Part shown: piece by piece, positions 23,359-27,432 of the stretch
Layout: each line of letters begins with the position of its first letter
Numbering within the stretch: the stretch's first letter is position 1
Notes under the pieces: model-generated
The model's input: only the letters and a program-made list of their open reading frames with translations
Databases searched by the model: none
Told to the model about the DNA's origin: nothing
DNA from: Convolutriloba macropyga
Lineage: Eukaryota
Assembly (NCBI RefSeq): GCF_964194025.1
Contig: NC_134473.1
Location: 11,780,001 to 11,844,000, forward strand
DNA length: 64,000 nucleotides
Reading direction: 5' to 3'
Position numbers and translations under genes: made by a program

Positions 23359-23588
23359 ATGTCTTGAGGTCCACCCCAGCTGAGGGCACGACCATGATTG
23401 ACATATACGGCGACCCTGAAGTGAGAGAGCGTGAGGAGAGGGAAGAGAGAGAACGGCAGAGGAGAATAGCAGAGAGAAGAGCTGATATTGATGACCTTCC
23501 CTTCTTCAGTGACGATTGGTTGGCTCTTTACGCAAGAGAGTGCTCAGATTGGCACCACACCAGACGCCGACTTCATTACGCTGCGCAG
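23359..23588 (+). CDS. Orphan gene A, copy 1, exon 2
   Basis: Acceptor GTCCATTTAG| (phase 1) and donor CAG|GTTATA (phase 0). Encodes DVLRS..E/R-rich..DWLALYARECSDWHHTRRRLHYAAQ, paralogous to 43056-43207. Confidence 0.82.
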
Positions 23589-24095
23589 GTTATAGTGAGA
23601 GTATTTTCCATTAGTTATGAACAATATACTAGTTATAATAGTTATTAATAGTCATGAAGTGATATAGCGGCTATTCATATTCATCTGCTTTCATTTTTTA
23701 ATAACAATGATTATTATCCAAAAGAATTTGCATTGTATCCAAGTTTAGGCCACAACTTATGAATAGACAGACTTTAAAAGTCTAGTGCGAGGGCACTTAT
23801 TTACTAAAAGTACATATTCGAGATTCCCTGTCGAGGCAAAGTCTATTCGTGGGTCGAGCAAAAGTCTGCTTTCCTGCAGATCTGGAAAATTTTTTATTAT
23901 TAAAAGCTCTCGAATGAGAAGCAAATATTGTAAACGCATGTGTCTTGATCGTTTTTGAGTTATTTTTCTAGAATAGTCTTTGACTTCTAAAGTGACTTTT
24001 CACGCACTTCAAGGATTTCAATAGGATACAGCCCCAGAATTAAATTGCCCCGCCTGTCATTCGAGAGCAATATTTTCAACGTTGGTCGGTTTATT

Positions 24096-24527
24096 AATTG
24101 CTCTCAAACGAAGTTTGTAGCAATTATATTAGTCCTGTCGGTCTTTTTTTTATGCGATTTTTCGCTTGACCAATTTTTCGTCTGACGCTTTTGACTTTTC
24201 GTCCTCAAAAACGGGATAAACAGGTAGCGCCCAGCGGGCATTATGTGCTCTTAGAGCCTTTCAGGTCTGCTTCAGCTCAAACTGTCTTGGAGACTTATAC
24301 TTATACTTATGGTGTGAGGGGCGGTTCTTAGAGGTTGACACCCCCACCCCCCTTTGTTGACCCCCACCCCCACTATTGGCTCCACCACCCCCCCACCGCG
24401 CTTTTGCCCCCCCCACCCAGTGCTGCCCCCATCAGCCCCCGGTGCACCCCCCCGTGGCTAGCTACTGACCAAGCCAACCGCTCGCTGGTCGTTTGAGAGC
24501 AATTCGCCCGACGTTAGTCGGTTATGT
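24096..24527 (+). mobile_element. Helentron/HINE-like element, cleanest copy
   Basis: Perfect 16-bp inverted repeats AATTGCTCTCAAACGA (24096-24111) and TCGTTTGAGAGCAATT (24489-24504); hairpin CCGAC-GTTA-GTCGG (24508-24521); T-rich end. Confidence 0.85.
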
Positions 24528-26239
24528 TTTTGTGTTGTTTTTGTCAGTTCATTTTATTTTTATTTGCTCTCGAAGAGAGGCTTTTGTTAAAAACTTTTAC
24601 GTCTTTTTTGCAAAATGTTTGCTTGACCGTTTTTTGACTTTTCGAATGACTTAAACGCCCTTGATTTTTTGCATTTTTTGTGATCTAAAATTCTCCCTCA
24701 ATAATAAATTCGAGCAGCTGAACTCAGTTGGCGGCAATTTAATACTAAAAGTCGAATGATAAGTGTGTCAAAACTGGCGTCATTTTTTCCTCTTTAAATT
24801 TTAATAGTCCTATATATAAATCTCTAATGAGGTTACTTGAAGCCCCTTGTGAATTTTTTAGTCCCATTCAGTGTCTCCGACTGAAGAAGGCTGCAATTGA
24901 TTAGATCTCCCACTGGTAGTTCGAGAGCAACTGTTCCAACGTTAGCGGGTTATGTTCTGCTTCTGAATAAACCATCAACGAAAAAAAGGCTAAATAGCAT
25001 TGCACCAGAGTAGTCCAACTTAAAATGCAGTTGGAAAGTTGCCAAAAATTTTAGAGTTTTAAACTCTTGAAATAATGCAGTCATGGTAGCTGACTATATT
25101 GCCACGTTAATTGATGACAGGAAATAGGCTGTTTGATTGTAGTGGCTTTCTACCAATAAACCATTATGGAAATATGGAAACAACACAGATTTTTACAGTT
25201 AAGTGGGTTTTCAGAACTATTTGCAGAAAAATGAATATTTAGAGTCAGACGTTTGCGCTTTTTTGTCACGTCTTTTTTTGAAACTCTGTTGCTAAAAACT
25301 TGTGAAAACTGTTAGAATGTTTTCTTATATAATTGTTTAAAGAGCAATTGTTTTGTTAAAGAACGTCGACACATCAAATTTTGAGGAACGAATTTTTACA
25401 GATAAATGGAGTGTTGCTTGATTACAGGCTTTTCTTTTTTAATTTTCTGGGTATTTTTGTCGCTTAGTGTATCTTCTCTGAAGTTGCTATTCCCTGAACA
25501 AACATAAACGATATCTTCTTGTTTACTGAGATTCATTGATAGGGCGTAGTCCTTTTTATTAAAATACAAAATTCATGATTGTTTTCCATTTCTATATTTC
25601 CTATATTATCTCTCTAATGTATAAATTCCACCATTTTTAATGATGAGTCACTTATAGAACAGAATGAACAGAAGCTGTTTCAAATTGTCTGCATTCTTTC
25701 CTTTTTATTATTTCTCTCCTTTTGCTCTATTTGATAAAGAAAATTTTCTTTGATCTAATGGTTACGTCCATTTTGGTGTCTATTTGTTTGGGCCAATTTT
25801 TTGGAATGCATTGAAAGATTTGCCTCTGTATGACATTGACTTGCTTCTTAAAACAAAAAAATTTCTCCTCATTATAGCTGTGCTAATTTTTTTTGCTAAT
25901 ATAGTGACTGAAAAAATTTTACGTTTTTTTTGTTCCAAAAATCTTTGATAGGATAGCCTACGCATTATTTCGCAGTCGTTAACAGAACGCAACTCGAGAA
26001 CTCAATTAAATCAGGTTGTGCAAAACCAGCTTATGAGTTTCAGCAACTCTACCAAGCAATAAAGAAAGAGTGCGAAAGTGATAATTATGAGTAGGACCAG
26101 TAGAACTGAAGGTCTCAAGTTGATTGTGATGAAGACAAACAAGTTTATCAACAATGCTTGAGTTTTGGCAGTATAAACTATACTTACGCAGAAATCAATG
26201 AAGATAACTGAAAAGTTGTCTCTAGAGCCTGGATTGTGA

Positions 26240-27040
26240 CTGGAGATCAAAATGACCTATGATCAGACCAACATTGGCCAAATGACTTCTGGTTCGAGGG
26301 TTAAAAACCAAAATGGACTGATTGTTCTGCGCTCTAATTGATTTTTATATTTAAAATGGGTTCAGTGTGATCTCTGATTGAACGATGAACGATCCCAGAT
26401 CAATACGACCGTTGATCAATTAATGACCAGAGTGTTGTCAACACTTTCGTATGGTCCTGACGACGATCATTTTCAGATCCTTGTCTAAACATTCGTGCGC
26501 ATGTGCACAAGCTTGAAATCGTTTTCGATCAAAGCGATGAAGTTGTTAGGCAATATGGGCTCTATTTTTTATGATTTAGGTTGGACGCAATAAAGTGGGT
26601 TTAATGTTTTTTGAAAATGTAAAGTCTGAAAAAAATCGAAGATATGATATGACTCAATGACGTGCAGTTCGTGTTTTTTCTTTTGTTGTCCATTATTGCA
26701 GTCCTAATAAACAAAGAACTTTTGGATAGTTTTCGATCAGAGATTTTGTGGTAAAACTTTAAAGCAAACTATGATCAGATTTGCGGTCGCATTACTGAGT
26801 CTCTGATAAGACTCTTTTGTGGCCGAATAGTGCTCTGACTTAGACCATTTCAGCACAAAATTGTATCTAATCAGACTGTCAAAGACTGTAATGATTTCTC
26901 ATCCGACTGGGCCCAGACCATAACGCAAATTTCAACGCGCTCGATTTCTTAAGGAACTATGTAATTTGAGCGCCAAATGCTCTGTTGTGCTCTCGACGAT
27001 GACCTGATCAGAAGTCATTTTGGTCTGTGATCGCATCTTG
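26240..27040. mobile_element. Degenerate relative of the TCTGATCAGAC MITE
   Basis: TGATCAGACC, GACCTGATCAGAAGTCATTTTGGTCTG and CGCGCTCGA motifs shared with 22319-23236. Confidence 0.6.
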
Positions 27041-27192
27041 AAATCCCGTAAAATGACTGATTTCAAGTATTTAAAAAGCTCATACGTTAAAATTGCATGT
27101 TTTGCTAATAGTTACCGGCTCTGCGGTGATATGAGGAAAACTAACTAGATATTAAAACCAACCACAATTCTGTTTGTTTATGTTTACTTCAG

Positions 27193-27432
27193 TGTGGCAT
27201 AGCAATGAGGGAAGCGGATGACCACTGGCGTCGTGTGAAAATGAGGATGTGTGATGAATCAGCAGGCTTAAGGCAGATGGGGGCGGTTTTAATGAATCTG
27301 AAGGAGAAAAGGGCAAAGACTCTCAGAAAAGAGATGAAGACACTCTCGAGGCTCCACTCTCTCAAATTTACCCTTCTCATATTAAATATGTATTTTGCCA
27401 AGTTGCCAAGAATAGAAATGGGCCCACTTTAG
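27193..27432 (+). CDS. Orphan gene A, copy 1, exon 3 (terminal; predicted helical)
   Basis: Acceptor TTTACTTCAG| (phase 0); CGIAMREADDHWRRVKMRMCDE..RLHS aligns without gaps to 47184-47399; stop TAG, then AATAAA at ~27454. Confidence 0.8.
   Translation, partial: CGIAMREADDHWRRVKMRMCDESAGLRQMGAVLMNLKEKRAKTLRKEMKTLSRLHSLKFTLLILNMYFAKLPRIEMGPL

Follow-up and report, generated by a model that had tools for sequence, protein, structure and literature searches.

Acoels are a fast-evolving and phylogenetically debated group of animals. The closest known relative of the genes studied here is the 346 amino acid (aa) "uncharacterized protein LOC142340770" of the acoel Convolutriloba macropyga (XP_075247590.1, below P0002), which is known by automatic annotation alone and carries neither a name nor a function. 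Among better characterized proteins, comparison is possible with generic antiparallel helical hairpins and coiled coils, with the bMERB (Rab-binding) domains and with zinc-binding Cys/His mini-domains. We analyzed a window of 64,000 nucleotides (nt) from contig NC_134473.1 (positions 11,780,001 to 11,844,000, forward strand), a eukaryotic, AT-rich stretch free of N runs and packed with interspersed repeats, whose closest database relatives fit an acoel worm. The window contains two tandem genes on the plus strand, A1 (16417-34881) and A2 (37310-52688), with four coding exons each. An original prediction, made from the sequence alone, had proposed a block of about 80 residues spanning their exon 2/3 junction as a candidate new domain. 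We judge it probable, at roughly 60%, that A1 and A2 represent an undescribed, lineage-restricted, all-helical protein family with an inferred scaffold-type function. The genes are under purifying selection, share an intron position with their relative, match no known family and are confidently predicted to be all-helical.

P0002 and the products of A1 and A2 share the order of their motifs (RRRN-S/T-I, D.YGD, W..Y..EC..W..RR.LHYA.QC, DHW, RM.DE, RLSNL, EGWMY.EDP and PPLLPPY), with 40-65% identity per exon to A1 or A2. The P0002 locus (L005) is single copy, in contrast to the tandem pair, and was taken in the analysis as an orthologue from another species. The four-exon structure recurs there, with a phase-0 second intron that separates Gln179 from Cys180, the Q/C position of A1 and A2.

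The block reads WLALYARECSDWHHTRRRLHYAAQ followed by CGIAMREADDHW... in A1, and WYAEYARECAQWPFRRRRLHYAVQ followed by CNIPIRQVNDHW... in A2. Within the 64-kb window, tblastn aligns the exon 2 parts of the two genes at 53% identity over 32 aa (E = 1e-7) and the exon 3 parts at 43% over 56 aa (E = 8e-11), both gap-free. The amino acid pattern that had been proposed is matched by A1 and A2 at every position, without gaps and across a phase-0 intron, and the TGC/TGT, CAT/CAC and TAC/TAT synonymous differences reported with it are present. Over the two exon parts, the Nei-Gojobori proportions of nonsynonymous and synonymous differences (pN and pS) are 0.33 and 0.77, the latter saturated, and identity is 33-47% at third codon positions and 65-71% at first and second positions. 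Given the saturated pS, the low pN and the low third-position identity, A1 and A2 are an old tandem duplication kept under purifying selection.

Conservation extends past the block. The remainder of the gene had been described as low-complexity and variable in length, which is accurate for exon 1 and the start of exon 2 and wrong for exon 4 (the "B" of the original prediction), where A1 and A2 are 50% identical over ~120 aa (E = 4e-35) and share the motifs RISNL, EGWMY..EDP, KEF..L and ADKPPLLPPY. Exon 1 of A1 encodes a low-complexity, disordered N-terminus that aligns at 35% to exon 1 of A2. A second version of the locus (L001; ENA ERZ25071359 ctg35524, 125992-146324) has 82-97% nucleotide identity to the window with many indels, and may represent a highly divergent haplotype or else a sister strain. 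Its exons diverge far less than its introns; exon 3 has one synonymous difference from A1 in the 150 nt compared, and the surrounding 1.1 kb differs by ~5%.

The gene models are consistent internally. Exon lengths add up to whole codons in both genes (1050 nt, 349 codons plus TGA, in A1; 951 nt, 316 codons plus TGA, in A2), which is an independent check on the six splice assignments. The exon 2/3 splice sites are canonical and at the same position in both copies (CAG/gtta ... ttcag/TGT or tttag/TGT, the slash marking the border, phase 0), and translation continued beyond these borders soon meets stop codons and shows no conservation. We looked for the gene in sequencing runs and found it in four, all genomic DNA with contigs that cross the exon borders and none RNA. 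Since the runs that hold the gene are DNA only, the Q/C junction rests on the comparison of the paralogues, the whole-codon gene models, the C. macropyga RefSeq protein and the contiguous block in metatranscriptome contigs; the C. macropyga genome at L005, its gene model and these independent transcripts thus support the junction. Alternative donors for exon 3 (AT/gtattt at 27396 in A1 and AAC/gtaaaa in A2) were rejected, as their positions are not homologous, the A2 donor does not fit the phase of exon 4 and the residues that would be added are unlike P0002. A transposon origin of the gene was rejected because exons 2 and 3 have the depth of single-copy sequence (~45), compared with 1e4-1e6 for the repeats on either side.

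A profile of exon 4 searched against 1.84 billion representatives recovered only four clusters. One is P0001, an allelic open reading frame (ORF), and one is P0002. The third comprises P0003 and P0005 (330 aa), encoded on intron-free contigs of 1.2 kb (from a JGI sample and Logan ERR1712226), and the fourth P0004, P0006 and P0007 (264 aa), on JGI contigs of 0.9 kb. Judging from their accession series, we take the contigs of the last two clusters to be from marine metatranscriptomes. The block is contiguous and placed before the exon 4 region in all three full-length relatives (P0002, P0003 and P0004), and BLASTP with the block alone finds them at E = 4e-19, 3e-11 and 2e-5, so further homologues do retain it. 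Other searches added no members. A word-index protein search with exon 4 alone returned only the allelic ORF P0001, with a length filter that hides full-length kin; with a three-protein profile it was swamped by low-complexity words (8000 candidates scored, P0003 missed); and with residues 146-346 of P0002 it gave the self-match only. A scan of JGI metagenomes with the family profile produced 118 pattern matches and none confirmed, in a collection that evidently lacks the metatranscriptomes holding P0003 and P0004. The family as seen so far covers acoel worms and two marine metatranscriptome lineages. Searches with window sequence were run per single exon, and the natural full-length P0002 was used in place of the spliced product.

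P0002 was modelled with AlphaFold2 from an alignment that included its relatives and the window exons. Residues 1-118 are disordered in the model, with a predicted local distance difference test (pLDDT) score below 50. Helices are predicted at 120-139, 153-164, 166-179, 183-216, 218-245, 250-276, 279-302 and 313-327, with pLDDT 80-98 over residues 150-300, and the exon 2/3 junction falls at a predicted three-residue turn (180-182). In the predicted layout of the block, a Pro/Trp kink separates a short helix (W...Y..EC) from a second helix (RRR-LHYA), and a turn then leads into a long helix, of which the block includes the first 50 residues. Modelled alone, the block gives a helix at 14-40, a turn and a helix at 44-100, with pLDDT 89 and a predicted template modelling score (pTM) of 0.51; it resembles one kinked helix, and its best VIA match (Z 6.2) is to single long helices. 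Without any compact-fold match, the block is not a compact fold by itself. The models place it as the first quarter of a helical body of ~200 residues, with no compact or recognisable fold alone. The proposal that the block is helical therefore agrees with the models of both full P0002 and the isolated block, and the proposal that it is the folded core of the protein does not, as conservation and confident helices continue through exon 4 to about residue 327 of 346. Conserved hydrophobic residues of the exon 3 part (W12, V15, M19, L26, L33 and L36) are spaced 3-4-7-7-3, from which we infer a fit to helix-helix packing.

The residues that are conserved across the family were compared in five lineages (A1, A2, C. 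macropyga, P0003 and P0004). None of the five has a gap in the exon 3 part, where H11-W12, R18-M19, E22, R40 and E47 are invariant; the Tyr of LHY is invariant too, and P0004 lacks the first two Trp. The original prediction had suggested that two conserved Cys and two His could bind a metal. Among these four only the His of H-W is invariant. The first Cys (of AREC) is Asn in P0003 and P0005 and Lys or absent in P0004, P0006 and P0007, and in the latter three proteins the first His (of LHY) is Arg and the second Cys is Ala, so that three of the four candidate ligands are lost. The losses in P0003 and P0004 refute a four-ligand metal site as a feature of the family on the sequence comparison, and leave a site confined to the acoel branch as an unlikely alternative.

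The block falls outside known families, as its description as new had implied: Pfam, NCBIfam, PDB sequence searches and two fold searches gave no specific match. Scans of Pfam-A and NCBIfam with every exon of A1 and A2 and with the three full-length relatives gave no score at a gathering cut-off, and NCBIfam returned nothing. The best Pfam scores were 19.0 bits for Elongin_A (cut-off 29.8) and 19.8 bits for DUF6756 (cut-off 27). The Elongin_A match on P0002 (E = 0.002, 19 bits) was rejected, being below the cut-off and on a Glu/Arg-rich stretch, with its Trp missing in A1. No PDB sequence matched below E = 0.08 when searched with single exons or with two profiles, and Foldseek against the PDB, with the full model and with the isolated block, gave nothing below E = 0.1. 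For the full P0002 model the best VIA matches have a Z of ~10 and cover residues 208-290, outside the block; by the tool's own note, such a Z is within the noise for helical models. Matches of this kind include generic antiparallel hairpins and coiled coils (the CHMP4B hairpin 4abm and the GacS DHp domain 7n0e), in which two helices of ~30 residues superpose on residues 208-286 of the model with Z 9.5-9.9, a root-mean-square deviation (rmsd) of 0.9-3.5 Å over 60-78 residues and 10-14% identity. These lie outside the block, span one third of the helical region and come from many unrelated families.

We considered whether the genes could instead belong to a family that is already known. A fast-evolving member of a helical family, such as the syntaxin/Vti1 Habc three-helix bundle or bMERB, could have diverged beyond the searches used, and the fast evolution of acoels would fit; the family profile matches the Habc domain of syntaxin-12 at E = 0.12 and A1 exon 4 matches the Pfam V-SNARE N-terminus at E = 0.11. 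The bMERB domains of Mical1 and EHBP1 are elongated three-helix structures of similar length, found by VIA with Z 9.6 and 9.2 over 126 and 116 residues. All of these matches are nevertheless below curated cut-offs, the bMERB alignments have rmsd values above 8 Å (8.8 and 8.2 Å, 8-10% identity, no Pfam match) at a Z of ~10 that is noise level for helical models, and the protein has no SNARE motif and no membrane anchor, ending in ...PPLLPPY(YDTI) without a hydrophobic anchor. We therefore regard this origin as unlikely. A role of the block in binding nucleic acid, as a basic helix of the helix-turn-helix or bZIP type or as the carrier of a nuclear-localisation signal, seems unlikely to us as well. 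The block is basic, as had been claimed, with a net charge of +8 in A1 and +6 in A2 over 73 aa, and an RRRR or RKKK cluster is kept in four of the five lineages. The cluster is weakened in P0004 (MRWKVRY), however, and no Pfam DNA-binding family was matched. Homeodomains and POU domains do appear among the weakest Foldseek rows for the isolated block, but at E >= 1.6 and probability <= 0.16, most with rmsd above 10 Å, and the conserved hydrophobic spacing suggests helix packing rather than a free recognition helix.

An autonomous zinc mini-domain, built from two Cys (in AREC and just after the junction) and two His (in LHY and DHW), is very unlikely, even though A1, A2 and P0002 have all four candidate ligands within 27 residues, a C..H..C..H set that these three acoel sequences share with zinc-binding mini-domains. 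In the model, the second helix and the long helix meet at the turn with the second Cys, and His174 and His189 of P0002 could face each other. Unlike in zinc mini-domains, the ligands vary across the family and lie in helices or at their ends, the first His comes 11 residues after the first Cys, and no zinc-finger-like fold or sequence match was found in the PDB, Foldseek or VIA searches. P0003 and P0005 have lost the first Cys. In P0004, P0006 and P0007 only the His of DHW is left of the four, although these three proteins retain the remainder of the region. A bolder reading, which we think improbable, is that the ~200-residue region is a new domain type confined to acoels and their marine relatives, in which a lineage-specific Cys/His metal site would clamp the first hairpin in the acoel branch and the H-W, R-M and E residues would form a new surface for binding a partner or nucleic acid.

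In the protein, a disordered N-terminal third (~100-150 aa, with an R-R-x-S/T-hydrophobic site and D-x-YGD) precedes a stretch of ~200 residues predicted to be helical. If A1 and A2 encode a protein-protein scaffold, the helices of the block and of exon 4 would together make up a single elongated bundle or an antiparallel coiled coil. The invariant H-W, R-M and E residues would then take part in its packing or in contact with a partner, and the Arg cluster would be a basic surface patch. The N-terminal R-R-x-S/T site may be regulated by phosphorylation, and the acoel-specific C-terminal LPPY may be a ligand for WW domains.

Both terminal motifs lie in predicted disordered sequence. RRRNSI is invariant between exon 1 of A1 and A2 (window 16660-16680 and 37540-37560), and RRRN-S/T-I/Y is kept in the variable, disordered exon 1 of all acoel-type members (78-86 in P0002; 62-67 in P0003). 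We take the R-R-x-S/T-hydrophobic site to fit the consensus of basophilic kinases (PKA/Aurora-type). The C-terminal PY-type motif is in the low-confidence tail (pLDDT ~50-58) and reads LPPYY in A1, LPPYC in A2 and LPPYS in P0002, so an L/P-P-x-Y motif in an accessible disordered segment, as expected of a PPxY/LPxY WW ligand, is present in all three. LPPY is missing from P0003 and P0004.

Several points weigh against a scaffold family. The AlphaFold2 alignments were shallow (9-10 rows, ~5 independent lineages), which makes the proposed helix packing tentative, and pTM is ~0.5. The family may be a very remote relative of a known one. The two metatranscriptome lineages lack the PY-type tail and some of the first helix, which are thus not core to the function of the family.

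The genes add an orphan, intron-conserved acoel family, without a Pfam entry and with "uncharacterized" as its sole RefSeq label, which should aid the annotation of acoel genomes and the cataloguing of lineage-specific genes. Lineage-restricted helical proteins are common and nothing in this analysis links the present one to a particular biological process, so interest will be modest until a function or partner is found.

Table 1. Coordinates of the exons, introns and paired intron ends of A1 and A2 (window positions; L005 positions in the last row)
Feature	Position	Strand	Description
A1 exon 1	16417..16720	+	ORF with start codon; donor G/gttaag, phase 1
A1 exon 2	23359..23588	+	acceptor ccatttag/AT, donor CAG/gttata; Asp-x-Tyr-Gly-Asp motif, Glu/Arg-rich helix, then block part 1 (23517-23588)
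A1 intron 2	23589..27192	+	3604 nt, phase 0; contains a ~436-nt repeat element (see text)
A1 exon 3	27193..27350	+	158 nt; block part 2, start of the long helix (C.I..R...DHW..V..RM.DE..GL...)
A1 intron 3, 5' end	27351..27365	+	GC donor, gctccactctctcaa; read as ..L-H-S in the original prediction
A1 exon 4	34524..34881	+	remaining conserved helical region, C-terminal ADKPPLLPPYYDTI, stop codon
A2 exon 1	37310..37601	+	
A2 exon 2	43056..43207	+	block part 1 at 43136-43207
A2 intron 2	between 43207 and 47184	+	3976 nt, phase 0
A2 exon 3	47184..47341	+	158 nt; block part 2
A2 exon 4	52340..52688	+	
Paired intron 3 ends, A1	27351-27362 with 34499-34523		
Paired intron 3 ends, A2	47342-47353 with 52310-52339		
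Paired intron 3 ends, L005	19614-19626 with ~28025-28048		

The end of the conserved pattern has a different origin. Its final R-x-HS had been read as protein and is a split Arg codon plus three codons of intron 3. Intron 3 begins AG/gctccactctc in A1, AG/gctccactccaac in C. macropyga and AG/gtttcactccaac in A2; the donor is GC in A1 and C. macropyga (gctccactc) and gtttcactcc in A2. The motif GTTAGAATGGAGC occurs 12-25 nt upstream of the acceptor in all three (ending ...TGGAAC in A2), and TGGAGC is the reverse complement of the GCTCCA at the 5' end of the intron. A2 differs at two of the paired positions: intron position 2 has changed from C to T, with a compensatory change from G to A in the 3' motif, and position 4 has a change that results in a G.U wobble. 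Pairing between the ends of intron 3 is thus supported by covariation across the two paralogues and the C. macropyga locus. The conserved, complementary start of the intron explains why the R-x-HS stretch resembled conserved protein.

Within A1 intron 3 there is also a G-rich tandem array (28818-29216) with units of 10, 37 and 47 nt that are GTCGGCGGAG-like.

The element in A1 intron 2 (24094-24529, ~436 nt) is similar to a miniature inverted-repeat transposable element (MITE), with terminal inverted repeats ATTGCTCTCAAACGA and TCGTTTGAGAGCAAT. A copy in A2 intron 1 (39490-39930) is 97-99% identical to it, and partial copies are near 20275, 21732, 27503, 29526 and 41774. In the DNA runs, 24091-24094 and 24528-24531 are the exact breakpoints of dozens of contigs, and word depth over the MITE reaches ~1e6, which makes it one of the most abundant repeats of the genome.

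Toward the window ends we found two further repeats. Four consecutive long ORFs at 596-6335 (plus strand) have the Pfam domains DUF1759, Peptidase_A17 (Pao retrotransposon peptidase), Integrase_H2C2 and DUF5641; by these domains the segment is a probable BEL/Pao-type long terminal repeat retrotransposon split across several frames. From 58084 to 63999, at the end of the window, there are ~33 copies of a 175-nt satellite (82% matches) with a GC skew of -0.33.

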